The position numbers and the translations under genes are program-made. The notes under the pieces were generated by a model. The model did no database searches, was not told the DNA's origin, and saw nothing but the letters and a program-made list of their open reading frames with translations. Shown here one piece after another: positions 46 through 60,205 of a stretch of 64,000 bases of DNA; positions within the stretch are counted from its first letter, which is position 1, and each line of letters starts with the position of its first letter. The DNA is from Hyphochytrium catenoides (Eukaryota; Protista; Hyphochytriomycota): assembly GCA_900088475.1 (NCBI GenBank), contig FLMG01002637.1, positions 8,312 to 72,311 on the forward strand. Direction: 5' to 3'.

Positions 46-3000
46 TTAGGCATTCTCTTTTCCCGCTAGCGAAGAATCAGGGCCAGGTATGTCAATAGAG
101 TGATTTAGGGGAGCGCCAGTTACATCCTTCTTTGACGACGAGCTTTCCGCATTCTTTGAAGAGATAGTCTGTCCCTGTTGGGCTGGGTGCTCCTTCAGAG
201 CTACAGCACCTATAGTAGCAGAGCTCTTCCGATTATGGAGTGATGATGATGATGGATTAACTGCAGAAGTGGAAGATACCTCCAGCATGCTCCCCCTAGC
301 TCGGTTCGATCCTGTTGTTGGCCGCGGCTGGTCACCAGTAGCAGTCTTCTTTGTCGACGTTCTGGAATGTGGATTCTTATAGAGGTAGAACAGTTTTGGA
401 GTCATCACAAGGACCACACAGATGAAGGCAACGAGGCAACAGGATGCTGCCAAGAGAACAACCTTTGTGGTAGGGCCAGTAGTGATGCCCAGAGCTAGAA
501 GGAGGGTTAAACCACCCATCAGAGTGACGCTATAAAGCCCAATCGCCAATTGTTTGGCTTCCGAATAGTCTTCAACGATGTGCCAAGATTTCACGGCAAG
601 ATATACTCCTACCGCCAGGACTAGACCTTTATAAGCCAGCATCACATACAACCCTGCGTTATCACCATAGTCACAGACTTGTCTTGAGACCTGACCCAGA
701 ACTTCGATGAACTCAAAGTCTATTGTCGAGGTCAATCTGGAGCCGAACTGCCAGCTTAGCAAAATAGTGATGTCCGCCAGAATGAAAATAAAGGTCTCTA
801 CGGCTACTCGACCGTTGGAAACTACGACGCGCTTGATCGTTTTCTGCCCGAAGAGAGTGTATACCCGCTTAAGCTTCATGAGGAGAGGAGCAAAAAGCAA
901 TGAGAAACTGATGCTCAAGACCCAAGGACGCCGCACACAGTTAAACTCATTGTTTGGTCCCAGTAAGGAAGTCGAGGAAGTCGTTAAGAAGATAGCTCCC
1001 ACGATGAAAAGGAGGGTGAAGTTGACCTGGGAAGCGATGAGAGCCTTTGAATGCCGGTAGGTTGAATGTGAAGCCAAGGAAAGGCACAAGAATCAGAAGG
1101 CAGAGGGCGACCAAAGAGAACACAACGGAAGCCACAGATGAGTCTACGGGCACGTATTCGCAGCCGATCTCAATATCTTTGTATAGGTCCTGACCACCCA
1201 GGCAGGTCTTGTTGTCTTCGGCGCCCAACCATGAAAATCGTGCCACCATCGCTTGTTCTCGACATCCTGACAAGGTGTACGCTATATGCTCGCGGTTGCA
1301 GGGCGGCTGTGGAGTTAGGACGGAAGACATTCCGAGAGAGATGCTGTTCGCAATGGGCCTCAACATCGGGTACACCGTCTCATGTGGAAGGACCGAGAGA
1401 CTCTTTCGAAAGTCACTTTTGAGGACCCAGTCTACAAATTCGGCAACTTTTTGCGCCTTTGAAGCGGAGTCGGAGCCCCAAACACGCTTGACCACAAGGT
1501 TGTACTCCTTAGACAACGGGTAGCACCCCAAAGAAGAGAGATCCTGGAACATGACCACATAAGGGGATAAGGGCCATACAGCGTTGAGTCCGAGCTTATC
1601 AAGACATCCTTCCATAGACGATAGAAATGGGAGCATTTCAGTGCCGTTAGACATGAAAGTAAGTACTGGAGTTACGAAGGTTGAGGCCTCTTCGGGTCTT
1701 GTCCACACAGCACCGAACGCCCCTGTCACACTCTCAACGGCACCACGCAGACCCCGCTCCGAAGTCATCTCAAGCACGTTGGGTCTGAAGGTTCGTAGTA
1801 GATTGAGGTTATTTGTAACTGAGAAAATGTCCCTGAACTCATTGCTCACTGTCGAAAGGTAGCTGCAAATTATTCGGGATATCTCAGTAGCTCCCACGTC
1901 AACCACCAGGGTAATATTGCTGTTAGGCAAAGCTAACGAAGGGTTCATCAGCTCCTTGAGGCTCGGATCATCCCATGATACGATTCTTCCTAGGTAAATG
2001 TCAGCCAGAACCTGTGGTGTCACGCTGAGTGTTGATACCGCGTAGCCTAGTAGGTTGAATATCAGCGCGACTGTGCCAACGAAGAGCGGGGTGATGGTAA
2101 GTTTTTTATCGACAGTCAGCTGTGTTATGAGTTCCCTGATTGACGCGGTGGAGAGGTAAGTTCTCGTGGACAGAAGCCCCATAGAGAGATCTCCATACAT
2201 ATCTGACGAGATAAGCTCCCACATGCGCTCATCCTTTTCGCGCCACCCGGGGTAAGGGGTGAGATGGGAAGACGTAAGCGCTCTAAAGCTGTCTAGGATA
2301 ACCTCCATCGAGCTTTGAATGTAATCAGAATAGCCTAAGTGGAGGAGGTTTTCTTCTTGATCCGCCGTCGCTGCTAGAGAGCACCGTCGTCCTGAGCCCA
2401 AGCAGGTGCATTGCGCCACAGGAACTCCAAAACAATTAGGCACACAAGAGACCCGTTGTGGCAGAGATGACACGATGCTCTGACGAGAAAACTCGTTCAG
2501 AACCGCAGAGCCGGATTCTCTAGCTAACTCCACGAAGTCTTGACTTGCGAAAGTCCATCGAAAGAATTCGACCAGTGCACTGCGTTTCTTACAGTCCCCA
2601 ATATGCGTCCTCCCTCGTATGGCCAAATAAGAAACAGAATTGATTGGCCAGCCTAATGGAGCGGCCGTGTCCACCACGGTAGCATTGTACCTTGCATCGA
2701 AGATGCGCCTTCCACAACCATCAAGGCGTTGGTGATAGTGTTCACGGAAGGGCTGACGACGTTGTCGACTTTGTTGATGAGCTGGACACTTGAGAACCCA
2801 CGCTCCATAGCTTCCGTGTGATACATAAACGCCATCGAGTACGGTAACAGGGTGAGCTAGTTGTACATGTAGAGCAAGGGGGCAGGGAACTGTTAGAGAC
2901 AACAATAAGAAAACAAGCTAAAGTTTAGGGTGAAGATTACCGCTGCAGTTCTGCTGTCGAGGCCTTCAGGGATATAATAGGTGCGCGTCTTATTTTCCTC

Positions 3001-3742
3001 TGTACAGGTCACCACTGCGTAAGGTAGTCCAGGTTCCCGCGGCTCCTCTGCGGCTACTCCTTGACACCATTTGGGTTGAGTGGAGCGTCCAATTGTAGCC
3101 CTGAAACCTGCACTAAACTCGCTTAGGGCCGTTGTGAAGACTTCAGTAACACCTAACGCGAGCCGAGGCAAGATGAGTCTAATGGGTAATGGGCTCTTGC
3201 GGCGGAAAAGCTATTGTCGGATTGAGGGCGATGATGGCTGGGTCGTCCCACTGGACAATAATGCCTTGAAAAATGTCCGCCAGGACCTTCCTTGAGAGTG
3301 AGATCATATCTCCCTCTTCCAGTTCTGCAATGCTCACAACGGGCACGACCGCTGTCACAGCTAAGGGAAACACCATGAGGTCGCGGTAGAGCTTGAAGTC
3401 TTCAGGTGGGAGCATGTGATCCAGGACTGCAAAGTCAGTGGATCCTTGAATAAGTAGCTCTTGTCTCCTCCCTGCAATTGATCCACTACCCTCATACTCG
3501 ATGTCAACTTGCGGCAGATAGGACGAATTCGTTGCGACGCTACTGTACATACGGGCTAGCCGAGGGAAGAGTGGAGCGGTCAGGGTCCCTCCAGAACCTC
3601 TTAGTTTCCATCCACTGATAGCAGAGGGACCAATAGCTACATCAGAAAGGGCAACACTATTCTTCGCCGCAAGGTAGGTAAGTGCAACAACCAGCCAGAG
3701 GCTGGCTGTCGCAATCCTATTGTCACACAATGTACCCCTCAT
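46..3742 (-). pseudogene. Frameshifted paralog of the tandem PstS-like / class C (7tm_3) GPCR; exons 3742-2941 and 2856-46
   Basis: ORF fragments 3179-3742, 2893-3171, 2653-2835, 947-2905 and 46-1089 align end-to-end with the intact gene at 9548-13271. An 84-nt GT-AG intron (2940-2857) lies at the same codon position (TAA|LTLLPYS vs TAA|FTMLPYS). Frameshifts occur at ~3180-3193 (+7), ~2705-2708 (+2) and ~1060 (+1). Signal peptide, PstS motifs (GSGGT, DFAVLD, LADIFQGIIVQWDDP) and 7tm_3 motifs (CVRRPWVLSISFSLLFAPLLMK, EAKQLAIGLY, TPK) are present. Confidence 0.85.
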
Positions 3743-9547: not shown

Positions 9548-12500
9548 ATGAGTTTCCCACCTCCTTGCCTGTTGTTCCACTCGTTTCTCCTCATTGCTAC
9601 CGTTGTGCAATCTTATAATGCTATGGCTACCTCCCTGGCGGATATGGATCACCATGCAACGCTGAAAGGTGCTGGAGGATCGATGGGTGCCCAACTATTC
9701 TCTAGGCTTAACCGTATGTACGATAGTGCAGTACCTGATCTAGGTCTTCTCGGAGTAGATATTATTTACGAGAGTACGCAAGGGTCTGTTGCAGGGAGAG
9801 AGAAGCTGCTTGCTGAAGGTTCTATACATTTCGCTGTGGTGGATTACCAGCTGCCTCAATCAGACTTCAAATCCTACCGAGACCTCTTCGTTGTACCGTT
9901 TGTAGCCTCTGCGTTGGTCCCGGTAATCAACATCGCAGAGCTGGAGGATGGACAAAGGATCATCCTGTCGAGAGAGTTACTGGCTGGCATATTTATGGGC
10001 ACGGTCACTCGCTGGGACGATGCGGGCATTGTCTCCTTAAACCCAACAATAGTAGATCTACCACCAGAGCCCATTAGACTCCTCCTTCCCACTGGCACCC
10101 CCAAGAGTGCAGAGATCTTTGCACAAGCCTTGAGCTCTTTCAGCCCAGAGTTTGCAGGTACCGTGGGCCTGACCCTGAAACCCCGATGGTGCAATGGCGA
10201 CGCTGTGTCCACAGCCGATCCTGGACTTCCATATAATACTGTCAATTGCAGCGAGGGCAATACCACCAGCAGGCTGTACTACACGGCAACTGGCAAGGAA
10301 GGTTTAACTGCAGCCGTAAGTCCGGCCTACGCCTTGTGTGGCGTAGCTGTATTCATGCCGTCCATCGTTTTAATCAGGTCTTAGACTTCAGTTGATGACC
10401 GCAGTTGCGCCTCCTGTCGCTTTTTTTCTCAAACAGCAGTTTCGCCAATGATACTGACTTGACCTTTTCCCGTCACCACAGTTCACGATGCTGCCCTATT
10501 CAATCACCTTCCTCTACTACAACGAGGCCATTGAACGAGACTTTGCAAGCGCCATGCTTATCAATAAGGCAAATGCTACTATTAGTGCATCTGTGGATAC
10601 TATCACCAACTCTTTACTAATGGCTGAAGGAACTTTTGACACGCGGTACAATGCCTCTGTGCTTGACACTGTCGCCCCACGCGGTTGGCCAATTGTCTCC
10701 ATAGCTTACCTCACCATTCGGGGAAGGACACATTTGGGTGACTGTCAGGAACGAAGGGCCTTGGCCGAATTCTTTCGATGGGTTTTGGTTAGCCCACAAT
10801 ACGTTGAGCTTGCACATAGTTTAGGATACGCGGTGCTTAGCGAGCACTCCCGCAAAAGCATTGTGGCGGATATTGCCAGCCAGGTCTCCTGTGTGTCTAA
10901 CTGTGTCGGTATCCCCAAAGCCCTGTGCTCCTGCATTGGGACTGGTAGGCGTTGTCGTAAGGCTGTAACACCCTCTCAAAAGGCCGAAGTGTTCTATCTA
11001 GGCTATCCTAGCTTCGTCGAGAGTTCAGTTCATGTTGTCCTGGATGGTTACAAGGGTCATAGCTCACATTCGGTAGGTAGGTATCCTGGATGGAGAGAAG
11101 ATAAAACTTTATGGAGTGCCATTGCCTCAGACCTCTATGCTGACATCAGCATGGGTTTGGTGTCGTCAAAGCAGATGTTGGCACATTTAGCGACATCACC
11201 CGAATCCTCGTCCAGCAGTCAAGATATACTTACTAACGGCGAGGTCGCCCTAACTCCTTTTTTCGTGGGGTCTGTGGGCATCGCTTTCAACCTCAATTCC
11301 TTACGCATGGTTACTGTCACGCCCGACGTGTTGGCAGATATCTATCTGGGAAAAATAACTCTATGGAATGACCCAAGGATCCAGCAGCTGAACTCTGATG
11401 TATCTCTACCGCCCATCAACATCTCTATCGTTATCGATGCCGGGGCCCTGGAGATATCTGAAGTTCTCATCACATATTTGCGGAATGTCAGTCAAGACTT
11501 TCACGATGCCATGGATGCCAACAGTAACCTCAACCACCTGCGTACCTTTCGATCTCATGTCATTGAAATGACGTCTGAGCTGAGCTTACGCGGGGCAGTA
11601 GCGGCCATAGAAGGAGCGATAGGTGGGGTCTGGATAAGAGAAGAAGACGAAGAAGATATCAATGTGCTGTTACTGCAGAGCGCCAGGGGCATCAAGATGG
11701 ATCCGTTTCTCTCTTCCATACGGGCCTGTTTTGACGCTTTAGGCTTGCGTGCTGTCTATCCCATCAACCGCTTTGCGTCTATCTTTGACAACGTCGCTAG
11801 AAACGATAGGGATTGTTGGCCGCTCGTTGTGGAGTATAATCTAATGGTCAAACGGGTGTGGAACGCGGACGGTGCTTCATCGACGGCCCAGGAAGTGGCA
11901 GATTTTTTACAATGGTTTATTGGGAATGATCTGCGGGAGGCCCTTGCTGTTTTAAGCCCAGACGTAGCGAGCTTCGTAATGTCCCCCATCGCACAGACCA
12001 TCTCTCTGGGTGAGGCTTCAATTCTGTCTCCTCAGCCGCCCTGTAGCCGAGAGCATATGGTCTATACGTTGTCCGCTTGCCATGAGCAGGTAATGACTGC
12101 GCGTATCAACTGGGCAAGTGGAACTGAGAGCCGAAGCTGCCTGAATGGTCAACCGTTATACGACGACATCGAAATTAGCTGTGATCATGTTCCTCTGGGC
12201 TCATCGGTGGCGTACGGGATCATCGCGCTCGTAGTCATGTCATCCGCCGTATTGGTCCCGTTCCTAGGTTTTACCTTCCATTATCGATATTCGAAGGCCC
12301 TTGTAGTTTCCCAAGTCAACTTCACTCTTCTGTTCATCATGGGAGCTACGTTCCTGGTCATCTCCTCACTTTCATTGATAGGACCCAACGACGAGACGAA
12401 CTGCATAGTGCGTCCTTGGACACTCAGTATCAGCTTCTCCGTGCTCTTTGCTCCCCTTTTGATGAAGCTTAAAAGGGTCTACACCCTATTTGGACAAAGG

Positions 12501-13271
12501 ACTTTGAGGCGAGCCGTGGTCTCAAACCTTCGAGTGGCGGCTGAGACCTCTGTATTTGTTCTGATAGACGTTCTTATCCTACTATCCTGGCAATTTGGCT
12601 CAAAAATAAGCTCCACAACAGCTTTTGAGACTATAGAGATCCTTGGTGATGTTCCTAGGGAAGTGTGTGACTATGGGAACAATGCTGGCATGATCGTTAT
12701 GTTGACCTACAAGTGTCTGGTCCTCGGTGTTGGAGTGTACTTGGCGATCAAGTCTTGGGAAATTGTTGCTGACTATTCTGAGGCCAAGCAGCTAGCAATT
12801 GGACTGTACAACGCCACACTAATGGGCGGCCTAACGCTGCTTTTGACCATGGTGATTGATACATCCATCACCATCAGGGTGCTCCTTCTGGCTGTTTCTT
12901 GCTGTATGGTGGCACTCATCTGCGTGATACTGGTTATGACACCAAAGCTCTTTTACTTGTACAAGAATCCAAACTCTAGAACATCTACGAAGAAGGCATC
13001 AGCAGCGGGACACCACCCTAGCTTCTCCCGTCCTCCTGCTCGAGGAAGCGTCCTTGACATAAACGCTAATGTCAGACCGCAGCCCATACTGTCAGATCCG
13101 ACATCCACTACCGGCCCTGAGACTCCTGCACTTCTTTCTGACCCAGGTACCAAAGTTCAGCCCAACAAGACGGTGGTGGAAAGCGCCTCATCTGTTGGGG
13201 AGGTAAATGATGGAGACAAAGTCTCATGCATGACAGGTCCTCGGAGGACCCTTAGCCCTGCGGTCCCTTGA
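9548..13271 (+). CDS. Class C (GABA-B-like, 7tm_3) GPCR with two tandem PstS-like periplasmic-binding ectodomains; exons 9548-10315 and 10482-13271, ~1,185 aa
   Basis: ATG at 9548 followed by a signal peptide. Phase-0 intron gtaag(10316)...acag(10481) joins GLTAA|FTMLPYS in frame. PstS-like motifs occur twice (LAGIFMGTVTRWDD; LADIYLGKITLWNDPRI; WPIVSIAY and WPLVVEYN). A Cys-rich linker precedes seven hydrophobic helices with class C signatures (C.VRPW.LSISFS.LFAPLLMK..RVY.LF, EAKQLAIGLYN, TPK). Confidence 0.9.
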
Positions 13272-18458: not shown

Positions 18459-20012
18459 ATGGGCTCAATAAAATCCTTTATCAAAGCTCTCGGGGCCGCT
18501 GTGCTATTGCTCGCATCAGCAGTAGATGCTCGACCTAATGGTGCCCCACGCTGTGCCATTAACCCGGATGCAATCTCTGGAGCTCATCAGTCCCAACCAG
18601 TGGATCTTGGAGCTAAACTGGTGGCCTCCTCTGCGACGTACACTCCTGGGCAGGTTATGGAAGTTACCGTCGAGGGCCCTGCGGAGTGGAAGGGTCTTCT
18701 TTTATATGGCGCCCAGGGCGAAGCAGAAGTCGGTCCTGGCAAAGCCGATGGCCGCAAAGCTCACGTCGGAAAGTTCATGGAGATTCCGCAGAACTTCAAG
18801 GCCCAAGCTGTTGATATCTGCCAGACTGCGGGGATTACCAATGAAGCCGATGGCTCAAACCCGGTAGAAGCCTCAACTATCACTCACGCAAATGGCCAGG
18901 CTAAGGGTGGAAAGGTCGTCTTTAAGTGGCAAGCCCCTGCCAATAATGTGGGACCCGTCAGCATCGTTGGAGCAGTGGCCATGGGTGGCCCCGGTGGCAA
19001 ATGGGGTGTTCTGAACCAGATTGTCCTTCAGCCTGCTGGCGGAGCAGCCAATGGTGCAGTGGGAGGTGTGGTCCAACAGACAGGAGCTAAAGTAGATGTG
19101 AATGGGCAAGCAGTCATTGACATCCTGCCTCCAGGCAGCGACTGTGGCTGTGGCTTTGGCAAGGCCACTCAGCAGCAAACTGCAGGGGCACAGCAGCCCA
19201 ACGGAGGTGTTCAGCAAACTACAATGGTCAACGGCCAACAACAGCAGCAGCAAGGCGGGGTGTCAATTCACGGAGCCTTTCAGGCTAACATCCAAGGTCC
19301 TTTCAATGGCTCTTTCGAGGAGTGGCTTATCCTCATGTTTGGCACTAGCGATTGGGGAGTCCTAACCCAGCAAGGCGGCGCGGTCGGCACTACGGTCCAC
19401 ATTGGGAACTCCATGGGTTCGTCTTCTCAAGGTCCAATCGGCTCCAGCACAGGAATTAGCGCCGGAGGAGTGCAGTCATCTACAACGGCCGGTACTGCTG
19501 GTAATGCACCTCCACAGCAAGACTCTCCGTCCTCGGGCTCTGCCAGCACAGGTATTGCTGGTAATGCACCCTCAAAGCAAGATAGTCCCTCTTCTTCGGG
19601 TTCTTCCGGCTCGCCATCCGCATTACCGAGTGGCCCGGTTCAACAGCAAGGTGCTCCCGCAGGAGAGCCATCTCCATCGGTGAGTGTTCCAGCCATTCCT
19701 GGCGTTGGCGCTGGTGCCAGCCAACAGCAGCAGAGTGTAGAGTTGCCTACAGGAGGGGCAACCTCTGGTGCCTCAGCACCTAGCAGCAACGCTCCTAGCA
19801 AAGCTTCTGGCGCCCCTGTTGGCTCCGGAGGGGCGTCCGCTCCCGCCGGAAACCCTATTCTTAACGCCGGTGCAGCTCAACAGGCTCCCGCAGCACCTGC
19901 CGGTGGCGCAGGCAATGTTGGAACGGTAGCTGTGAGCGACGACATGATTATCGACTCTAAAGACATCGTAGTGGAGGACACCTCGGGAGCTGGCAGGCGT
20001 CTTCGGCATTAG
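18459..20012 (+). CDS. Secreted Reeler-like domain protein with Q/G/S/A/P-rich tail, intronless
   Basis: Signal peptide ending ..AVDA, then RPNGAPRC, YTPGQ.MEVTV, WKGLLLY, HVGKF, TITH and FKWQAP..GPVSI, the Reeler motif series. Uninterrupted 517-aa ORF. Confidence 0.8.
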   Translation: MGSIKSFIKALGAAVLLLASAVDARPNGAPRCAINPDAISGAHQSQPVDLGAKLVASSATYTPGQVMEVTVEGPAEWKGLLLYGAQGEAEVGPGKADGRKAHVGKFMEIPQNFKAQAVDICQTAGITNEADGSNPVEASTITHANGQAKGGKVVFKWQAPANNVGPVSIVGAVAMGGPGGKWGVLNQIVLQPAGGAANGAVGGVVQQTGAKVDVNGQAVIDILPPGSDCGCGFGKATQQQTAGAQQPNGGVQQTTMVNGQQQQQQGGVSIHGAFQANIQGPFNGSFEEWLILMFGTSDWGVLTQQGGAVGTTVHIGNSMGSSSQGPIGSSTGISAGGVQSSTTAGTAGNAPPQQDSPSSGSASTGIAGNAPSKQDSPSSSGSSGSPSALPSGPVQQQGAPAGEPSPSVSVPAIPGVGAGASQQQQSVELPTGGATSGASAPSSNAPSKASGAPVGSGGASAPAGNPILNAGAAQQAPAAPAGGAGNVGTVAVSDDMIIDSKDIVVEDTSGAGRRLRH

Positions 20013-21169: not shown

Positions 21170-21982
21170 CTACTTGGTCAGCTTGAATGACTGCGGTAAC
21201 ACTAGACCCGTATCTTCAGCCAGTTTCATGTGATTCATTACCACGACCACTGCGGCACTGGCAAATTCTCTTACTAGCGGGTTGAGAGTGGTAGATCGTA
21301 CCTTTCCAATGAGCGTAAAGACTTTCCCATGCGCGAAGCGGATGTTGTTGGCAAAGGCAACGTCAAAGTCATCACCCATTTTGCCCTGCATTTCCGTCAG
21401 GAATGCTTGTTGTTCAGCGTTTGGCATGCTGGGCAGGAGAACTCCAAGTTTGTCTGCAAGGCAACGCACTTGCTCGTCCAGGTCGAGATGATTCTTCTCA
21501 ATAGTCTTCGCTGCTGCCTTCACGAGGGCGGAATTGCCGCGCTGCAATGCTTGCTGACTGGCAGGAGCCTCCCAAAGTCCGGCTTGTCTCACCTTCACGA
21601 TAAAATCGATGTCGTCAGCGCTGAGGCCCAGAGGATTGGGCTGAAAATTGGTAAGATCTCCACTGGGTGCTGCAGCCCCCGCAGCTCCTGTGGCAGCAGC
21701 GCCGCCGGCAGTAGGCGGGAATGGGGAGAGAACTTGTCCGCTAGGAGGTGGTGGTGCAGCTTGCAGGAACCGTTGGGTGGTGACGGTACCATCAACGCTA
21801 CGTTCAGCAGGCAGAGGATGAGTGAAACCGACTGCCAAAACCACAAGAGTGACGGCGGCCAGCGCCACGCCAGCCACAGTGTAGCGCTTCGACTTCATCA
21901 GTTGTCGGAGCGGCAAGGGCTGTCGCTGTTGCTGAGAAGGTTGGTTATAAGCCAGCTCCAGATCACTGAGGTTATTACTCAT
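21170..21982 (-). CDS. DUF4142 (ferritin-like) protein with an N-terminal transmembrane anchor, intronless
   Basis: TM segment TVAGVALAAVTLVVLAVGF. Domain motifs D.DFIVKVRQAGLWEAPA, H.DLDEQVR.LA.KLGV.LP, G.DFD.AFAN.IRFAHGKVF and VR.FA......V.NHM.LAEDTG match my recollection of actinobacterial DUF4142 proteins. Confidence 0.75.
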   Translation of the reverse strand: MSNNLSDLELAYNQPSQQQRQPLPLRQLMKSKRYTVAGVALAAVTLVVLAVGFTHPLPAERSVDGTVTTQRFLQAAPPPPSGQVLSPFPPTAGGAAATGAAGAAAPSGDLTNFQPNPLGLSADDIDFIVKVRQAGLWEAPASQQALQRGNSALVKAAAKTIEKNHLDLDEQVRCLADKLGVLLPSMPNAEQQAFLTEMQGKMGDDFDVAFANNIRFAHGKVFTLIGKVRSTTLNPLVREFASAAVVVVMNHMKLAEDTGLVLPQSFKLTK

Positions 21983-28900: not shown

Positions 28901-29234
28901 TTCTGATTCCAGCAGGAAGATGTGGGAAGGAAGAACCGTGAAGGAAGCTGCCACCTACTCCGCTTACCGTTGTATCAAGGCCTGCCCTTCTGCTGCTCAT
29001 GGTTCCTGAGAGGGCAAAGAAAATGAGGAGCTCGCCTCTCTCCCTCTTTTCCACTTCCATCAGCTTTCGCTCTCTGTTGATCAGAAACAACAGACCTGGG
29101 AGGAGAGTCGTCCGATTGCAGAGAGGTCATTGTTCAATCTGCAGCCTTCCCGAGGTCTTGGTCGAAGGAGAGCTCGCACAGTTGTCACTAGACCCCGTCG
29201 AAAGCCAAGTCTACTTGGGAGATCAACCACAAAG

Positions 29235-30431
29235 ATGTTGTCTCTTGCCGCGACACAAAAGCTTCTCTCAATATGCGTCCTGGCTTTGGTCGCTTCAACA
29301 TCTCCGCCTGTAGGCGCTCTTCCCACCGGCGCCCCAGCTTGCCATTATAACCCCGCAGCTATTATGAAGGGCCACGGTCCACCAGCAACAACCCTCGAAG
29401 GCGCAAAAATCACGGTTACCCCGACAACCTACACCCCTGGACAGACATTAAAGGTTGTCATCAATGGCCCAGCTGGCTGGAAGGGTCTTCTGCTCTACGC
29501 AAGCAGTGCAGGGGCCGTTTCTTCAGGGGGTGCCTCCCCCATTGCCACCAATACTACCAGCGGCAGTACTAGCACCTCCTCCAGTGGAAAGGCCTCCTCT
29601 AGCAGCACCTCTTCATCATCGGGCACTGGGTACCGGCGGCTGCAGGTTACTGGCGGCGGGGGTGCGACGGGAGGCACTAGCGGTGGAGCCACTGGAGGTG
29701 CTACAGGAGGCACCACCGGAGGTGCTACGGGTGGTGCAGGTGGCGCCACAGGAGGTGCAGGTGGCGCCACAGGAGGTGCAGGTGGCGCCACAGGTGGTGC
29801 AGGCGGTGCCACTGGTGGTGCTGGTGGAGCCACAGGGGGTGCTGGCGGAAGCACTGGTGGAGGAGCTACTGGAGGTACCACAGGAGGTGCAGGTGGTGCC
29901 ATGGGCGGGACTAGCAGCGGTGGTGCTGCTGGGGGCAGTACTACAGGTAGTGCTCCACCAGCAGCCGGAGCAGCAGCTGGAGGCACGAAGAATCATGTCG
30001 GAAAGTTCATCAACCTTCCAGCCAAGTTCCGTCCTCAGGATCCTGCCAAATGCTCTGGGGCCAGCGTGAAGAACGAGGCCCTAAGCACAAGCGGTGCTTC
30101 GACCATCACTCATTCGGATGGATCCACTAAGGACAACACCATTACGTTCGATTGGGTTGCTCCATCTGCGGCATCAGGACCTATTACCTTCTCTGCTGTG
30201 GTCAATATGGGTGCTGTGCAGAGTAAGTGGATGCTGATGGAGGCGATGGCACAGCCCTCTGGCGGTGCGGGCGCCGGTGGTGGTGCTTCTGGAGCAAGTG
30301 ATTCCACTGGTGGCACCACAGGCACCACTCCATCTACCTCTGCGGCCACTCAAGCAACCAACACCCACTGGTCTGTCTGCTTATCAGTTGCTGCAGTTGC
30401 GATCAGCGCTGTCTGTGCCGTTGTATTATAG
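29235..30431 (+). CDS. Reeler-like protein, probably GPI-anchored, with the domain split by a S/G/T/A-rich insertion; intronless
   Basis: ATG at 29235 and signal peptide. LPTGAPAC, YTPGQ and WKGLLLY precede a ~165-aa insertion; HVGKF, TITH and FDWVAP..GPITF follow it. S/T-rich stalk and hydrophobic C-terminus (WSVCLSVAAVAISAVCAVVL). Paralog of 18459-20012. Confidence 0.8.
   Translation: MLSLAATQKLLSICVLALVASTSPPVGALPTGAPACHYNPAAIMKGHGPPATTLEGAKITVTPTTYTPGQTLKVVINGPAGWKGLLLYASSAGAVSSGGASPIATNTTSGSTSTSSSGKASSSSTSSSSGTGYRRLQVTGGGGATGGTSGGATGGATGGTTGGATGGAGGATGGAGGATGGAGGATGGAGGATGGAGGATGGAGGSTGGGATGGTTGGAGGAMGGTSSGGAAGGSTTGSAPPAAGAAAGGTKNHVGKFINLPAKFRPQDPAKCSGASVKNEALSTSGASTITHSDGSTKDNTITFDWVAPSAASGPITFSAVVNMGAVQSKWMLMEAMAQPSGGAGAGGGASGASDSTGGTTGTTPSTSAATQATNTHWSVCLSVAAVAISAVCAVVL
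29718..29846 (+). repeat. Coding 21-bp tandem repeat (GGATGGA heptapeptide), about 6 copies
   Basis: Unit ggtggcgccacaggaggtgca repeated with synonymous variation. Confidence 0.85.
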
Positions 30432-32823: not shown

Positions 32824-34677
32824 TCATCGTCGACGGGCCTGCTTTTTACGGAATCTTGTGTATGGATCCAGCATCAGCTTCAGAATCTCATTGTCGACAG
32901 GCTCCCAGAAGAACTGCTCAGCCATTTGTTCCCTAGAGGCAGAGAGAAGAGATTTTTTCATCGCATTGCTGATGTTAATCTCTAGCGGCATACCATCCGC
33001 TATAAACGTTGCCATCATTTCCATAGAGGTCGCCAGTCGCTTATCTGCCGTCATTGATTTTTCGCGGAAAGCCATAGATTGGTCGTAATAAATAAGCTTC
33101 TCGCAGCAGAACTCAGAGACAAGAAACGATTGAAACGTGGCTCGCGCTCCAATGGTACAAGTGTCAAGAAAGCTCTTAAGCTCTTTTGCGGAGTGCACCG
33201 GAGGAGACTCTGTCTTCTCCTCCACTTTGTTGTGGTCCCCTCCATGAATCTCCTTCCCACGTGGTTGAATATTCTTGTTGTTGCCCTTCTTCTCATTGGA
33301 CGGTATGATGCTCTTCTCTGGCTTTTGTTGTTCATCTTCGGAAACGGGTAAAATTTGATGTCTTGACACCGAGGTTGAAGCGAGTCTTAGAAACCTCTCT
33401 TTCCACAAATGCCACTCATTGTTATATGAAGTGACTATCAGAGACACGCTGAAGACCCAGCTGTAGAGATGCAGGCCAAAGGCGCCGACAATGGAGAGGA
33501 GATCCAGCAGATTGTAATAGAGCTCTGAGTCTGTCTCTTCGAGACTGGCCGGGACGAAAGAGTAGGTCGCTGTCAGTGCCATGGAAGCGGAGGCAGCGTC
33601 GAGCCGTCGGCGCATATGGAACGACTCTTTAACCTGAGGCAAGAGGACGAGCGGGCAAAGAATCCAGAGAAGCTGGTAGAAGACACAGTTGACTTGATCG
33701 AAAGAGGCCTGAGGAGGACGACAGTCAGAACCACAAAAATTTAGTACGCAAATGGAACCAGATAGAGGTTATGGAAGCCTAGAAAGACATGTATGTAGGA
33801 GATGGTGTCGAACGGGAAAGGAAGAGCGGCAGGCAGACAAACCAATAGACCTAGAAAGAGACTTGAAGACCTTGATTGGACCGATGTGTGCACAGGCCTG
33901 GCATACCCATACAGTGAGAAGAGCAAGGGGCATTCTTCATCGACCACCTCAAACCCGCCGCAAGAAAGGAACTTATAAGTAAGACATGTCGGTCCTTACC
34001 CCTAAGCTCGTCTGCTGGCAATGCTCGAAGTCCGCATATGGTACTGTCCAGTCCTCAACCTCAAACACACTACGAATTACGCCCATCCAGCTCTCTCCCC
34101 ATACAACCAACGCTAAGGGAACTAACAGCCATCTGCTCTCCAGCTTTTATCTGTGCCGCAATAGGAATGTCCGCGTGTTTCCGGCAGCCAAGTCCTGCTG
34201 GCACTTACTATCTAGATATAGCTTCACTGTGCAGTAGACCAACAGGAACGTGACTGGGAAGTAGATCGCGTCCCAGAAGAGAAAGGGGAACCAGCAGGGC
34301 GTGCTTTCTGGCATAAAGTAATATGCCACGTAGGCCCATACCTGGAAAGGGATAGTGCATTCGATGAAGACTAACGCTCGGACATCTAGGAGGTAAAGCG
34401 GGTACGTCTTCCGCCTCCGAATGAGAAGGAGAATGCTAGGGATGGATACCAGAAACGCCGAAATACAGATAGCGAGGCAGGTTGTCGAAGCCGTGGCTGC
34501 AAGCAAAAGAGTAAACGATGAGGAAGTAACCTCTTCAGGGCTCCCGGCGGTACCGCTTGCACTGCCATATGAACTTTCACTGCTACTGCTACTCTCGCTC
34601 CCTTCACCGCCATCAGCAACAAGCACTGACGAGTCGAAGGAAAAGGAAGAAGACTCCTGCCACAGGCTGCTTATCAT
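32824..34677 (-). pseudogene. 7TM-RGS protein (AtRGS1-like architecture) with one in-frame TAA; probable exons 34677-34000 and 33708-32824
   Basis: Seven hydrophobic segments result if reading continues through TAA 34149-34147 (..LLRHR*KLESRWLLVPLALVVWG..) and splices gtaagg(33999)...cctcag(33709). C-terminal RGS box: F.SFLVSEFCCEKL, FI.DG.PLEINIS, EILKLMLDPYTRF. An extra small exon between 33999 and 33709 cannot be excluded. Confidence 0.7.
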
Positions 34678-40010: not shown

Positions 40011-41476
40011 TGCGATGCGATGTAGAAAGGGACGTTTGTGTGAGAGTAACGGCTGCTCCCGCTCTATTATTGGCCTCGGACTACCAAGTCATTCCCGTTG
40101 TCACCGTGATAAGCTCTCCTTCAGTTGCCGTTCCCCTGAAGGTTTCCAAAGCCTTCTCATTGCAGGCTAAGAAAAGTACACCACGAACTAAGAGTAAGAA
40201 GGAGGCTCGCAATCTTTCATATTTTATCCTTCCCCCTCAATGCAAAGTATTCTTCTGCACCGTTGTGACCAAAGGACACAGACAAACCAATCCAGCAACG
40301 CATTTCTAATGTGGGTTCTATTTGTGGCAATCATTGCGTACGAGCTGTTCCCTGTAACACCATCTCTTGCCTGAAAGTCCGGAATGGGTGGGGCGGAGAT
40401 GGTAAACTGGACTCTAAAGTTTCAAAAGCTTCATCTCCTTTCTATCTAAATCTATGGGAAATCACTTCTTGAAAGATACGAATGTACTACAGACGCTGCA
40501 ACAAACGAACGAAGGTTAGCTAAGCAGAAACTGGCTCTTGATGGTCTGCAATGGCGTGATCAGGGCTAAGCTGCTTAAGATGGGTAATAAGACTAGGCAA
40601 GGCTGAGGGCAGCCTTAGACCCTAAAGAGACAAGCGATGAGTGGCGTTTGAGCAGTGATGGTTCTTCAGTAACGCCCCCTCGGTGTGAAAAGGAAGGTGA
40701 CAGAGAAGTGAACGGTAGAGAGACAGAGGGACAGAAAGAGACAAGCAGACGCAAACAAAGGACACCCAAATGTACCATCAAAGGGAGAGGGTAGACGGAG
40801 ACAGAGCGTCGGAGGAGATGAGAAAACCTGGAGAAGAAGGGCATTCAGAGAGAGAAAGAATCAGAGGAAGGGATGTGAATGAACGTTACTCCCTCTGCAC
40901 CGGATCTCCCCTATTTTCAGCCGCAGCTGCACCAAAAACTGCAGTATCCGCCTGGTCCTCTGACTCTGCCTCTCCCTAGAGACTTTGAGCTCTTGCTTGC
41001 AAAGACTCCTTTAGCATTCTGATTCTTGTGCATGGCGTTATGATCTTCCAAGTCATTGCACAGAGGAAAGAGCCGTTGTCCACCCCTGGTGGTATTGAAA
41101 AGGCTCAGGAGCCACTTGGAGCCAGCTCTTTTCCAACCATCACTATGATAGGAAGCCTCCTCTCCGCCCACGATCTGATCTGTCCCCAAACTCCGCTTGC
41201 GCTTGTATAATAGTTCTTATGAGTCTTCCTCTTCAATTCCCACTCACTCTTCTACTCCTCTACAAAAGACCAGCTGAGGCGTGATAAAAAGCAGTCACAA
41301 GTAATAGCGAAACCCCTCGTAGTGTGACTGTTCACCCTCACAGCCTGCTAAGTTTCACTCACAGCCGGGCTGTCAGCCGTCACTCATCAAATTTCCGCCT
41401 ACTGGCCACCTCTCACCAATCTACTCTCAACCAGTGTAACAAAGAAGAAAGCACGTCGTTCTCTCAACCACAGACG

Positions 41477-42073
41477 ATGGCACTTCTCAACAGCACTAAC
41501 GCTCTTAGCCTTGGCACTAAGGCGGCAGTACCCACACCACGCCGCCGCCATCTCAACCGCCAGCGATGCATCGTTGAAGGATGTCAAAAGTTTGCTAGAG
41601 GATTGGAAGGTGTCTGCATCCGCCACGGTGGCCAGGGCAACAAACTCTGCCAGGTCCCAGGATGCATTCACCAAGTACGCAAAGGAGGCGTCTGCGTAAA
41701 GCATGGCGCTGAGAAGAGGCTCTGCAGCAAGCCCAACTGCAACAGAACTCTCTACTCTAAGGGTTTATGCTTTGGCCACCACCGTTCCCACTTTGGCAAG
41801 AGCTCTCCTACCAACAGCCAGTCCACAGCTGTTCAGTCTGCACAAGTCCAAGCCCCTCTCGCTTTCAGATCACCTGCCGATGAACTCTTTTTCCAACTCT
41901 TCGATGTAGAAAACCATGGCCCCGCTATTGACCATGAAGCAGTTCTCTCAGCCTACGAGGGTGCACTTCTGAAGAGTACACCCGAGGTTTGCTTCTCCGT
42001 GGAGGAGTCAGTGTTCATGGACCTCACCAATATCTTCACTGCGCCCCCAAGTGATGCGGTTTTTGTTTTCTAA
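41477..42073 (+). CDS. WRKY19-like zinc-finger repeat protein (three C-x4-C...C-x2-H units)
   Basis: ATG at 41477. Units CIVEGCQKFARGLEGVCIRHGG, CQVPGCIHQVRKGGVCVKHGA and CSKPNCNRTLYSKGLCFGH, followed by an acidic/aromatic C-terminus. Confidence 0.8.
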   Translation: MALLNSTNALSLGTKAAVPTPRRRHLNRQRCIVEGCQKFARGLEGVCIRHGGQGNKLCQVPGCIHQVRKGGVCVKHGAEKRLCSKPNCNRTLYSKGLCFGHHRSHFGKSSPTNSQSTAVQSAQVQAPLAFRSPADELFFQLFDVENHGPAIDHEAVLSAYEGALLKSTPEVCFSVEESVFMDLTNIFTAPPSDAVFVF

Positions 42074-49768: not shown

Positions 49769-52473
49769 CTAATGAGCGTTGGAGTTCACTTGAGAAAAGA
49801 CTCTGAGGGGATGTGCCTCAGTGTTGAAAGTGTAGTCGTCGAGAGATATGTTATGGTACGGGTCCATAAGAAGGTAGGCATATTTGAAGACTTCAGCGAA
49901 GACATAGCTTGGCTGACCATCGTTGAGTAGCCTTGCCTGAGCTGGACTATTGAGGGAAGACGATGAACGTTTCTGGCGAACATCATTGTACTCCGCTAAA
50001 CCATACTTGGCAATACAGCCATCTCGTATAGACTGTTGGGTCAAAGGAACATGATAAGTCACTTCTCCGACTAGTGTGAAGTAAGACCACACCCAGCCGA
50101 AGGCAATGAACACGTTCAAACACTAGAGTAGCACTCGGAAAGACTTTTGCTGCAAAAAAAAAAAAGGTTGAGGATCCACGAATGGGAAACGAGGCCTAGT
50201 GGTTGGCGACAGAAGAGGAAGTACATTCTAGGAGACGCATTATAGGCCAGAGGCGAGGTGAGAATAGCTAGATTTGATGTTACCTGAAAAATTTTCCAGC
50301 CCATTTCTCTATATATAGGGTCTCCGGTAAGCTCGTGCAGGTAGAAAAGGGACTCTAATGTCTCGGGTCTCAAATAATACGTAGGGTTTGATATATCCTG
50401 TAGCTTTCCTTTCTCCGAGAACTGGTATGTGTCCCCCGAGAGCCCTGAAGGCTGCGAGACAGTGTGAGTGCGTTTATCAGCTGGCGATACAGATACGTGT
50501 CATCGCTGTAAACCTTGCTCCTACCGTGGAGGTAAAGAGCTTGACACACGTATTAGCGAGTTTCCCGGCCAACGCAAGCAGCTCCTTCCCTTTCTCTGAC
50601 ATAATAGGCTGATAAACAGATTCAGAGCCCATTGCGAAAGCGCCCAGGGCCAGGTTTCCGGGAAGATAGCATGTTAACTCTTCCATCCTCCAGTCCTACA
50701 CAGCGGATACGTGGAGTTAGACAGCTGGGTGTGCTGTGGAATGGTCATTCACTCTCACCGATGATAGCTCCCCGTCGAAACTCATATAGCCTCCCGTCAC
50801 AATAGGGATTTTGAGGCGCCTAAACCTCATGCCCGGTGAAAGGTCATCAACCTCCTTTAACAAATACTCTTGCATTGATGTCACTGCCTTCTGCCATGTC
50901 TCAAGTAGCCAATTCTCAGCTTTGCCTCCTTGTAGGTAAACCTAGACGTAAAATTGGAGGTATCAAGTCGCCGTGCCGTGCAATAGGAATTTGGGCACAA
51001 GCGTTTAGAACCTTGACGGGACAGAATGACATGCATAAGGAATACCTCACCTTCAGCAGATACTCATAGAAGGAGTCTGCCAAACCGCCTACACTGATTG
51101 GAGAAACCTGAAAAGTGCCGCGTTCAACGTCATAGTGGGTGAAAAATAGGCCGCCTATTTCTGGCTTAGCCTCCCTAATGCGCTCATAGATTGCGTTGGC
51201 CCGATCTGCATAGGAGGAATTTCCGGTAACATGGGAGAGGTAGCGCATCTCTAGTTGGTAAGTTCCCATGTCAGCTAGGGACGTTCTGGAGGACATAAGA
51301 ATGATCTTAGAAAGGTCATGCCAGGGACCTGACGCCAGAACCTTAGTGAATGGGTTCGACAGCCACTTCTTTAGAGTGAGAATTTGCATGGGACAATGAA
51401 AAAGAAGCTTATTCACGAGTCAACCACTCACACGTCGGGACCTAAGTAAAGGCCGCTGCTGGAATTGTCCTTGAGATTGAACGCCATAGGCGGCACCCCA
51501 GTCTTTGTCCCTTTGAAAGCTCTTATCATTTTGTCTGCCAGATGTCGTGCCTTGGTTAAGAAGACTGAATCCTCCGACAGGTCATATGCGCTAAGTAAAC
51601 CTCCTAAGTTGCGAATGCTGGTCTCAAACAGTGAGACATAGCCGCTCTCTATTTTCTCGAAGTCCAGCGTTTTTGCGACCCATTCCCGTGCGTCTTGGAA
51701 CTCTTCCTACAATGAAACAAAAGGATTGAAGAAAAGCCGATGAAAGAGGGACGACGGATGAGTACGGGGCAGAGGTCGTGACGGACAAGCTAGCACATCG
51801 AGAGGCACTAGCTTCTCAATAAGAAGGGGCTTCTCCAGGCAACAGACAGGGTTATAATAAGCAAGAGGCGGCAGACCGCATTAGTTTGGAAGACCTTGAG
51901 ACCCAAAATGAGAAGGGTTGAGAGAGAGTCCAGAATAGTTGTCCCTTGTCCACCGAATGGCTGCTTTATCGCCCCACTGACTGGGGCAAGCTCGTCTGCT
52001 CCCCATGCCCTTCCATGTTAAGCGATGTATTAGTGCTGAATGATACACGCTTCCTAACGTAAGTATGATCTTATTGCACACCGTCCATAGGATTCTTACC
52101 GCTCCTTATAGTTTCTGAACATGAATTTGATGACTTCCCGGATATTCTTTCGTCTGAAGGCTAGCTCTGGGGTGTCCGTATCAGTATATCGACCTTCACG
52201 GGCTCTCGCTCTCCGCGACGTTAAGTACGCTGCTCTTCTTGCCTCATGGTCCAATCCATTATCCTCCCATCGCTCACTGCCCCTAAAGCCTCCGAAGTGC
52301 CCAAATCGGGACGTCAGGGTGTCACCGAAGCTAGCGCTGGTCTCATCCCTACTTCCTAAGGAGTACCATAGCAGTAGCTGGCAGCTCACAACGACGCATA
52401 CAAGTATTCCAATTTTGAAGCGTGGCCGTGAAGCAGAGGTGCGCCCTCGTTGTTCCTTCCTCGCTTCTTTCAT
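49769..52473 (-). CDS. Glycoside hydrolase family 47 alpha-1,2-mannosidase, type II membrane protein, multi-exon
   Basis: N-terminal TM segment. Spliced motifs AWGADELAPVS, TILDSLSTL, VSLFETSIRNLGGLLSAY, LADMGTYQLE, GGLADSFYEYLLK, MEELTCYLPG, YYLRPETLES, SYVFAEVFKYAYL and FNTEAHP. Internal exon edges are only partly resolved. Confidence 0.92.
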
Positions 52474-59400: not shown

Positions 59401-60205
59401 GGACTGTTAGTAAGCGCAGTAACAACTATGAGGCCAGACCTTGCAAAGGTAGTGTTGTGCCAAGTGCCTGTCGCCGATCCGCTCACTACACTCAGTCGAG
59501 GTAACGTTAAGAGATGGAATGACTCTCTATATAATAGCCAAGCACCGTCCTCGCTGGCGGTGGTGGGTCAACAACAGCGGAGCAAATTGCTAACGTTAGA
59601 TCGCCTACAGACTTCTACTATGCAGGAGAGTATGGAAACGCAAATCAAGCGGAACATTTTGAGGTGAGCAGGCGCCCTAACACATTGCCCGTCTTCTGGC
59701 CTGACGCGTAGAGCAATCCTGACTTGTCCCTTTCCTGCCTCCTCCACTTCAATGCCACAGAACCTCCTGTCCTACTCACCCTACAGCAACATCAAGGAGG
59801 TAGCTTATCCAACAATGGTGGTCACAACATCTTTCTATGACGCTCGGGTAAGTGTTGTATCTTCACCCATCCGAGGAGCTAGCGCGGAGAGGAGTGGCAG
59901 TGTTTATGACATAAAGCACTTGCGGCAGTGGCTGACGCCTAGCTCTGTTGCTTTGCCCCTCATGTCAGGTTGGATACTGGGAGCCTGCAAAGCTTGTTGC
60001 AAAGTTTCGCCAAAAGAAGACTGATAGCAACCTTCTCTTATTCAATGCTCCAATAACGGGCGGACATGGTGGCCAAGACTATTATAAGGACTTTGCCATC
60101 TACCACGCATTCGTGCTGGAGCAGCTGGGCGTCGTGGTAGTTGCCGGACAGAATAAGAGTAGTTATACAAACACCTCTTCTTCGTCTACTGCACCTGGGT
60201 TCTAG
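56498..60205 (+). CDS. S9A serine peptidase (oligopeptidase B scaffold) with a signal peptide, ~13 exons
   Basis: N-terminal PPVAP..P....FG..NGEDRGPNPM.PP..DDY.WL. Catalytic-domain motifs SHDGAEVPMS, LYGYGGF, NVRGG.EKG..WW..G.LLKKKNSFYDFIACAE, GGSNGG (Ser), YDARV (Asp) and GGHGG (His). Exons join in frame via GT-AG introns. Confidence 0.9.

Follow-up and report, generated by a model that had tools for sequence, protein, structure and literature searches.

The gene at positions 9548-13271 of the window, the 64,000-nucleotide stretch of the Hyphochytrium catenoides genome analysed here, raises the question of how a bacterial-type phosphate-binding module can stand on the membrane core of a eukaryotic G-protein-coupled receptor (GPCR), and of what such a receptor would sense. 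External phosphate sensing in unicellular eukaryotes is, to our knowledge, largely unsolved. The type I flytrap (ANF_receptor) defines metazoan class C subfamilies, not the 7tm_3 superfamily. A sequence-only reading of the locus had proposed a signal peptide, two PstS-type domains separated by a Cys-rich hinge, a Cys-rich linker and a GABA-B-like seven-helix (7TM) domain; it had further claimed that a bacterial binding protein was recruited and duplicated, that the resulting receptors are candidates for an uncharacterised, nutrient-sensing family, and that the gene is present twice in the window.

The gene, hereafter copy 1, reads as two exons on the forward strand (256 + 929 codons by open reading frame and splice signals; Table 1). 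The open reading frame that opens at 9497 has its first ATG at 9548; exon 1 ends in phase 0 at 10315, with a GT donor at 10316-17 and an AG acceptor at 10480-81, and exon 2 starts at 10482 in frame with a 927-codon open reading frame (10488-13271). We infer the splice between 10316 and 10481 from homology continuity and from an intron position common to the paralogue. The exon-1 and exon-2 matches cover successive parts of the NCBIfam PstS model TIGR00975 (positions 1-163 at exon-1 amino acids 39-208, 4e-22, and positions 188-307 at exon-2 amino acids 4-127, 1.7e-9), and a single PstS domain is therefore cut in two by the intron. With domain 2, the stalk and the 7TM domain all inside the one uninterrupted 927-codon frame, the fusion of domain 2 to the 7TM is independent of any splice. 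The encoded order is thus the one previously proposed, from a signal-peptide-like N-terminus through PstS domain 1, the hinge, PstS domain 2, a four-Cys stalk and a class C 7TM to a Ser/Thr/Pro-rich tail; the signal peptide is a call from hydropathy.

Table 1. Positions of copy 1, its paralogue (copy 2) and their features in the window.
Feature	Position	Strand	Evidence
Copy 1, exon 1: 256 codons, signal-peptide-like N-terminus and N-terminal two thirds of PstS domain 1	9548..10315	+	ORF, first ATG, TIGR00975, PBP_like_2
Probable signal peptide, ~25 aa; hydrophobic core aa 2-20, small residues near aa 25-27	9548..9622	+	hydropathy; cleavage site inferred
PstS-like domain 1 (distal), intron-interrupted	9656..10871	+	TIGR00975, alignment to E. 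coli PstS chains, family alignment
Intron, 166 nt, GT...AG, phase 0, inside PstS domain 1 (predicted)	10316..10481	+	sequence, PstS profile continuity, paralogue intron position
Exon 2: 929 codons + stop, domain 1 C-terminal third, hinge, domain 2, stalk, 7TM, tail	10482..13271	+	one open frame
Cys-rich hinge between PstS domains, five Cys in 22 aa (exon-2 aa 137-158)	10890..10955	+	sequence
PstS-like domain 2 (membrane-proximal)	10986..12035	+	TIGR00975 2.2e-24, PDB PstS matches, AlphaFold + Foldseek, family loop comparison
Four-Cys beta-rich stalk between domain 2 and TM1	12042..12182	+	Cys positions, conservation, model beta strands
Class C (7tm_3) seven-helix domain, GABA-B-like	12195..12935	+	Pfam, PDB sequence search, Foldseek, conserved residues
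Cytoplasmic Ser/Thr/Pro-rich tail + stop codon	12936..13271	+	translation
Copy 2: paralogue, same architecture, head to head with copy 1	46..3742	-	tblastn of each copy-1 exon against the window; sequence reading
Copy-2 7-bp tandem duplication, leading to a stop at 3181-3179	3193-3180	-	sequence reading
Copy-2 intron, 84 nt, codon position identical to copy 1	2940-2857	-	tblastn + sequence reading
Copy-2 frame change	near 2707-2701	-	sequence reading
Copy-2 frame change	near 1061-1059	-	sequence reading

Both ectodomain modules align with bacterial PstS. Exon 1 also carries a Pfam PBP_like_2 match (6.5e-10), the TIGR00975 match that reveals the second PstS domain covers amino acids 63-312 of translated 11001-12200, and the PDB sequence matches to both domains are all PstS proteins. 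The three TIGR00975 pieces score 78.6, 37.2 and 86.1 bits, below the equivalog cut-off of 205, and on these profile scores the two domains are PstS homologues rather than equivalogs. In an AlphaFold model of the part carrying domain 2, the stalk and the 7TM (pLDDT 82), domain 2 superposes on whole bacterial PstS chains, and its top 14 Foldseek matches in the PDB are PstS or PhoX (TM 0.72-0.80 on target). Sequence and predicted fold together place domain 2 in the type II periplasmic-binding-protein fold of PstS, and domain 1 is supported as PstS-type by sequence only. A Pfam scan of the copy-1 protein gave no match to ANF_receptor or Peripla_BP (type I Venus flytrap); the outcome named beforehand as speaking against the sequence-only reading, an ectodomain closest to type I modules, did not occur. 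Recruitment of a bacterial-type binding protein is the natural reading of the homology, and the two domains align with each other (26% identity over 97 residues, E 3e-8). Relative to PstS/PhoS of the bacterial PstSCAB ABC transporter (PDB 1IXH, 9K3X, 5WNN), to which both modules are homologous at E 1e-9 to 1e-24 against TIGR00975, copy 1 differs in a phosphate loop replaced in both domains, in scores far under the equivalog cut-off, and in being tethered to a GPCR where bacterial PstS hands its ligand to a permease.

The membrane core is that of a class C receptor. The Pfam 7tm_3 match extends over exon-2 amino acids 572-818 (9.3e-27; 94.7 bits against a cut-off of 33.5) and profile positions 5-249 of 251, with seven hydrophobic segments, of which TM3 falls under the hydropathy threshold yet is helical in the AlphaFold model. 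The best PDB sequence match is GABA-B2 (4e-14), in keeping with the GABA-B-like character first proposed, followed by GABA-B1, mGlu2 and GPR156, and Foldseek returns GPR156, GABA-B and mGlu. Copy 1 retains the TM3/ECL2 Cys pair, Lys and Arg in TM3, Glu in TM6 and Pro-Lys in TM7, hallmarks that it shares with GABA-B1/B2 and GPR156 and that are conserved in 72-89 of 85-89 aligned relatives; the same set (TM3-ECL2 Cys pair, basic residues at the cytoplasmic end of TM3, TM6 acidic, TM7 PK) has been listed for diatom class C receptors (PMC3727952). As read from the translation, the copy-1 7TM is intact and keeps the class C activation hallmarks. It is joined to the ectodomain by stalk cysteines at exon-2 amino acids 521, 533, 553 and 567, each a Cys in 88-97% of aligned relatives, including relatives with other ectodomains. 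In the hinge, by comparison, only the fifth cysteine is shared (39/39 relatives), whereas at each of the first four, where 33-38 relatives have an aligned residue, at most one of them has Cys (0-1); the hinge spacing is identical in the paralogue. Four of the five hinge cysteines are, on this alignment, specific to the copy-1 lineage. GABA-B receptors, the nearest solved 7TMs by sequence and fold, differ in having a type I (ANF_receptor) flytrap without a Cys-rich stalk, where copy 1 has two type II PstS domains and the four-Cys stalk; in the copy-1 tail, a Pfam scan found no family match and no coiled-coil or other pairing motif.

This architecture is far from unique. An exhaustive protein search returned 3718 relatives, 34 of them at E<=1e-30, with the closest database match at 32% identity. 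Phaeodactylum, whose GPCR3 and GPCR4 carry nearly consecutive gene-model numbers (Phatr3_J44131, J44133), was rejected as the source of the window on account of this low identity. A word-index protein search had given no match for exon 2 and a single DOMON plus 7tm_3 protein for the 7TM-only query, which reflects a sensitivity limit and not absence, because the exhaustive search recovered so many. Domain scans of seven long relatives found PBP_like_2 and 7tm_3 in every one and two PBP_like_2 stretches in five; such proteins, often with PBP_like_2 twice, occur at 25-32% identity in Plasmodiophora, Mallomonas and many metagenomes, the architecture being present in numerous further eukaryotes as well, and single-stretch alignments (query amino acids 4-849 and 239-836) span the binding domain and the 7TM. 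Plasmodiophora brassicae PBRA_005806 (CEO97692.1, P0040), the Mallomonas annulata EukProt protein (P0006) and Spizellomyces SPPG_06488 share the order of one or two PstS-like domains, four-Cys stalk and class C 7TM, with a proximal domain that is degenerate in all of them, as in copy 1. Sequence comparison thus shows copy 1 to belong to a widely spread eukaryotic family of tandem PBP_like_2 plus 7tm_3 proteins. Among relatives the stalk and 7TM chassis also bears ANF_receptor, Peripla_BP_6, Bmp, Laminin_G_3 with cadherin-like domains, or DOMON. A 7tm_3 core with a solute-binding domain of bacterial type mounted on it is also known from class C receptors of Allomyces (OpuAC, SBP_bac_1, LysR_substrate) and from the Dictyostelium Grl receptors (Bmp) (PMC3251606), which use other binding-protein families where copy 1 has PstS, in tandem.

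The receptor family is accordingly not newly recognised: Krishnan 2012 already listed the PstS-like plus 7tm_3 architecture, with Spizellomyces SPPG_06488 as an example (PMC3251606), and Rolfe 2016 listed 7tm3 and binding-protein fusions in the Plasmodiophora genome (PMC4815078). The claimed duplication stands as a tandem but not as a local event, being old and common to distant relatives. What does hold is the lack of functional characterisation, since we found no study of ligand, G-protein or localisation for PstS-type class C receptors in the searchable literature, and a choanoflagellate GPCR catalogue (PMC12716839) makes no mention of periplasmic-type domains. The tandem-PstS class C design is therefore catalogued in several protists and functionally uncharacterised in that literature.

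The ligand question turns on the contact residues, which we scored in E. coli PstS numbering as T10, F11 (backbone), S38, D56, R135, S139, G140 and T141, plus D137. In E. coli PstS, R135 and the S139-G140-T141 turn give several hydrogen bonds to the anion. At the first eight of these positions domain 1 reads S, M, S, D, P, P, K, S, with D137 changed to G, and so departs from the phosphate-contact set: the equivalents of T10, S38 and D56 are retained as S45, S80 and D99 in the alignments to E. coli PstS and to the family, and the loop R135-x-D137-x-S139-G140-T141 has become P-T-G-T-P-K-S. As aligned, half of the phosphate-contact residues of domain 1 are lost. In domain 2 the loop is fully changed (R135 to D, D137 to G, S139 to L, G140 to E, T141 to I) and D56 is probably S. 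Most tandem relatives, unlike copy 1, carry the full signature in the distal domain ([ST]10, S38, D56, R135, D137, S139, G140 and T141), whereas the canonical loop is found in the proximal domain of none of 14 by a crude regex-based count; there the relatives have a conserved loop of their own, R-S-x-x-S-[DE]-[TS]-N. The loop of the paralogue differs again from that of copy 1. Because the complete contact set survives in the distal domain of most tandem relatives, sensing of external phosphate was probably the original role of the family. With R135, D137, S139 and G140 replaced in domain 1, the ligand of copy 1 is probably not canonically bound orthophosphate, and the earlier suggestion of nutrient sensing, plausible for the family, is not supported as it stands for copy 1. 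The loop change might mean that binding was lost altogether, rather than a new ligand gained; the conservative change of T141 to Ser and the three contacts left are compatible with weak or differently coordinated phosphate binding.

Copy 2 is 46-68% identical to copy 1 in amino acids, by segment. The gene is thus present twice in the window, as claimed, but the second copy is not intact: its reading frame is broken at three places, and it is probably a pseudogene. Other open reading frames of the window encode, by Pfam, Reeler, RGS, La, WRKY19-type zinc finger, DUF4142, S9 peptidase and GH47 domains; the RGS-domain gene, ~20 kb from copy 1, says no more than that the genome encodes components of G-protein signalling.

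We put at about even the chance that copy 1 is a cell-surface class C GPCR whose tandem PstS-derived domains now recognise a ligand that is not orthophosphate bound in the canonical way, the gene being a diversified member of a receptor family that has expanded in the genome. In such a receptor the type II PstS tandem would take the place of the type I flytrap and be linked to the membrane core through the conserved four-Cys stalk; a small solute would bind in the distal-domain cleft and close it, the movement would reach the seven helices by way of the degenerate proximal domain and the stalk, and the helices, probably as a dimer, would activate a heterotrimeric G protein. More tentatively, the tandem-PstS class C receptors may be the surface sensors by which protists and algae detect phosphate or oxyanions, expanded and re-tuned in their pockets in this genome, with copy 1 detecting a different anion or phosphorylated nutrient or else acting, like GABA-B2, as a partner that binds no ligand and couples a canonical paralogue to its G protein. 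Taken by itself, a ligand-blind role, in which copy 1 would pair with a phosphate-binding paralogue and supply G-protein coupling as GABA-B2 does for GABA-B1, is rather unlikely: both pockets are degraded while the 7TM hallmarks are fully kept, and the 7TM is most similar to GABA-B2, yet a freely drifting pocket would not be expected to conserve half of the domain 1 contacts, and the tail lacks a pairing motif in the Pfam scan. That copy 1 is instead a true extracellular orthophosphate sensor, its changed loop binding with other coordination or lower affinity, we consider unlikely; the clear PstS ancestry of both domains, the retained S45, S80 and D99 with only a Ser for T141, and phosphate as the likely ancestral ligand, given the whole signature in most tandem relatives, weigh less with us than the replacement of R135, D137, S139 and G140 by P, G, P and K in domain 1 and of all five loop residues in domain 2.

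Two further readings concern what kind of protein this is. The Plasmodiophora fusions were labelled 'novel putative transporters' (PMC4815078), and JGI automatic names call relatives 'ABC-type phosphate transport system substrate-binding protein'; these names come from the binding domain only, whereas the membrane part of copy 1 is a class C GPCR domain with receptor-activation residues and does not, in the Pfam scan, resemble PstC/PstA permeases or members of other transporter families, and we reject a nutrient transporter as highly improbable. Hardly credible at all is a gene-model artefact that joins a secreted PstS gene to a separate neighbouring GPCR gene. An intron does have to be assumed, but it lies inside domain 1 and not between binding domain and 7TM, the paralogue agrees with copy 1 in layout and in the place of its intron, and alignments to relatives run through both parts in one stretch; for domain 2 and the 7TM the single open frame already refutes it, and this reading too is rejected.

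Copy 1 alone is another divergent member of a catalogued family that the searchable literature leaves without functional characterisation. Its distal pocket, without the arginine-serine-glycine loop, makes it a useful specificity variant or negative control in binding studies, and a receptor that combines a high-affinity phosphate binder of bacterial type with a G-protein-coupled core is an obvious and directly testable candidate for a phosphate sensor. The family shows that two binding modules can be carried in one class C chain, and that a type II fold instead of type I is compatible with class C receptor function, or at least with the maintenance of such receptors by selection.

Copy 1, the receptor gene on the forward strand, encodes a fusion of two PstS-type binding domains to a class C seven-transmembrane (7TM) core. 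Exon 1 matches Pfam PBP_like_2 (6.5e-10), exon-2 aa 572-818 match 7tm_3 (9.3e-27; 94.7 bits, cut-off 33.5), and the NCBIfam PstS profile TIGR00975 finds a second complete PstS domain at aa 63-312 of window positions 11001-12200 (2.2e-24). Hydropathy adds a hydrophobic stretch at the N-terminus to the 7TM helices, the Cys-rich hinge between the PstS domains occupies exon-2 aa 137-158, and four more cysteines (the stalk, exon-2 aa 521-567) immediately precede TM1. Sequence matches in the PDB are all PstS proteins for both binding domains, and for the 7TM region GABA-B2 scores best (4e-14), followed by GABA-B1, mGlu2 and GPR156. Since the membrane-proximal PstS-like domain (domain 2), stalk and 7TM share a single unbroken ORF, the fusion of a PstS-type domain to the class C core is independent of the gene model, and the architecture observed in the sequence-only reading is real.

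The proposed splice joins a first ORF (start 9497, first ATG 9548, stop 10384) to a second of 927 codons in a different frame (10488-13271), each exon having been searched separately. The donor at 10316 lies immediately 3' of a complete codon, the acceptor at 10480-81 closes a pyrimidine-rich tract, and 10482 is in frame with the 927-codon ORF, so that the exon model has the same limits, 9548-13271, as originally proposed. TIGR00975 aligns exon-1 aa 39-208 to profile positions 1-163 and resumes in exon 2, where aa 4-127 cover positions 188-307; the distal PstS domain (domain 1) therefore spans the intron. A same-architecture paralogue (copy 2) carries an 84-nt GT-AG intron (2940-2857, minus strand) whose insertion point agrees with that of copy 1 to the codon, both introns following Thr-Ala-Ala. 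Profile continuity and this shared position, both indirect, thus point to the predicted exon 1-exon 2 junction.

Features of the receptor genes and of other genes in the window
Feature	Position	Strand	Detail
Exon 1, copy 1	9548-10315	+	256 codons
Intron, copy 1	between exons	+	166 nt, phase-0; GTAAGT donor, AG acceptor
Exon 2, copy 1	10482-13271	+	929 codons plus stop
7-bp tandem duplication, CCCATTA CCCATTA	3193-3180	-	paralogue PstS domain 1; exact repeat, shifts frame, creates TAG stop
Frame change, paralogue	near 2704	-	tblastn split and sequence reading
One-base frame change, paralogue	near 1060	-	tblastn split and sequence reading
WRKY19-type zinc fingers ORF	41324-42073	+	
DUF4142 ORF	21170-21982	-	
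Prolyl-oligopeptidase (S9) gene	57363-59667	+	split
GH47 mannosidase fragment	50916-51416	-	

The paralogue lies head to head with copy 1 across 5.8 kb, in which no ORF of at least 120 codons was found. With each copy-1 exon as tblastn query, matches extend over 3604-253 of the minus strand in five segments, whose amino-acid identities are 46-68% and peak in the 7TM. The segments are separated by the intron and by three frame disruptions, at the first of which copy 1 has a single CCCATTA. The disruptions may be assembly errors; because none falls in a homopolymer run and their sum does not restore the frame, the paralogue is probably a recent pseudogene.

Elsewhere in the window, a minus-strand ORF that encodes strongly hydrophobic segments (34150-34677) is located upstream of an RGS-domain ORF (32827-33642, minus strand; Pfam RGS 1.1e-8 at aa 166-266), and 32824-34677 is a probable multi-exon transmembrane-RGS gene some 20 kb from the receptor pair. 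Two large forward-strand ORFs, 18459-20012 (1.2e-6) and 29130-30431 (1.6e-7), carry Reeler domains and probably encode secreted products. The zinc-finger, DUF4142, S9 and GH47 ORFs are ordinary eukaryotic genes.

An AlphaFold2 model of window positions 10869-13031 (hinge to 7TM end, 721 aa, aligned with 89 relatives) has a mean pLDDT of 82, with the hinge poorly predicted (pLDDT < 55) and short beta strands in the stalk. In Foldseek comparison with the PDB, PstS or PhoX structures take the first 14 ranks (TM 0.72-0.80, normalised to the whole PstS chain, ~345 columns), so that the modelled part of the ectodomain is of PstS type, as had been proposed, rather than a type I flytrap; the membrane part matches GPR156, GABA-B, mGlu and CaSR at the next ranks (TM up to 0.81, GPR156). 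The TM3 cysteine is kept in 88 of the 89 aligned rows and the ECL2 cysteine in all 89, and TM3 Lys and Arg, TM6 Glu and TM7 Pro-Lys, conserved in most rows, are present in copy 1, whose membrane core looks signalling-competent by these residues. Each stalk cysteine is likewise Cys in 88-97% of aligned relatives, including those with non-PstS-like ectodomains: ANF_receptor or Peripla_BP_6, Bmp, Laminin_G_3 with cadherin-like repeats, or DOMON. The stalk-plus-7tm_3 relatives are a very modular protist receptor clade. Six relatives (P0001, P0026, P0031, P0048, P0054 and P0078) combine the four-Cys stalk and 7tm_3 core with DOMON, with Laminin_G_3 plus bacterial cadherin-like and Big_9 repeats, with Bmp and TIG, or with single or double ANF_receptor domains.

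A word-index protein search with exon 2 gave no match; the exhaustive search reached 3718 proteins with E<=1e-3, of which 34 have E<=1e-30, and its best match is only 32% identical. PBP_like_2 and 7tm_3 occur together in all seven long top matches scanned, PBP_like_2 as two stretches in five of these, and relatives come from metagenomes, a transcriptome, a Mallomonas annulata EukProt protein and Plasmodiophora brassicae PBRA_005806. In the ESM Atlas, clusters labelled Chlorophyta and Discosea contain the PBP_like_2 and 7tm_3 pair; 7tm_3 is paired with OpuAC in a diatom cluster. Earlier work had reported a glutamate-family receptor of Spizellomyces that carries PBP_like_2, and Allomyces receptors with other type II binding domains (Krishnan et al. 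2012, PMC3251606), ABC-periplasmic-like N-termini on Phaeodactylum class C receptors (Port et al. 2013, PMC3727952), and Plasmodiophora 7tm3 fused to SBP_bac_1 or PBP_like_2, named transporters (Rolfe et al. 2016, PMC4815078); our literature search found no functional study of PstS-type class C receptors. The sequence-only reading holds for the protein's make-up but rated both its novelty and the second copy too high.

Residues of the copy-1 pockets are compared by the numbering of E. coli PstS chains in the PDB alignments. A true phosphate sensor, which we consider quite improbable, would have to work with a domain 1 that retains S38 (S80) and D56 (D99), has S45 for T10 and M46 for the backbone-contacting F11, and reads P-T-G-T-P-K-S in place of the loop R135-A-D137-G-S139-G140-T141. 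In a MAFFT alignment of distal domains, the phosphate-contact set is complete in most tandem relatives, the Plasmodiophora and Mallomonas proteins among them; four relatives lack the loop, like copy 1. By regular expression, a count cruder than the alignment, the canonical loop occurs in 9/14 distal and 0/14 proximal domains, two of the five distal domains scored as degenerate being near-misses by eye (one loop SGI-ended, one full loop just beyond the span of the expression). In domain 2 of copy 1, R135, D137, S139, G140 and T141 are replaced by D, G, L, E and I; proximal domains conserve a loop of their own, R-S-x-x-S-[DE]-[TS]-N, with an acidic residue at the G140 position in 33 of 44 relatives, as with the copy-1 Glu. 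That copy 1 is a ligand-blind partner subunit is also unlikely, and with middling confidence we favor a ligand other than canonically bound orthophosphate. Such a ligand would drive closure of the PstS-type module, which the stalk would relay to the GABA-B-like core. In our reading, when the family arose its distal module bound phosphate and its proximal module had a structural or relay role, and in copy 1 specificity has since changed or binding has been lost.
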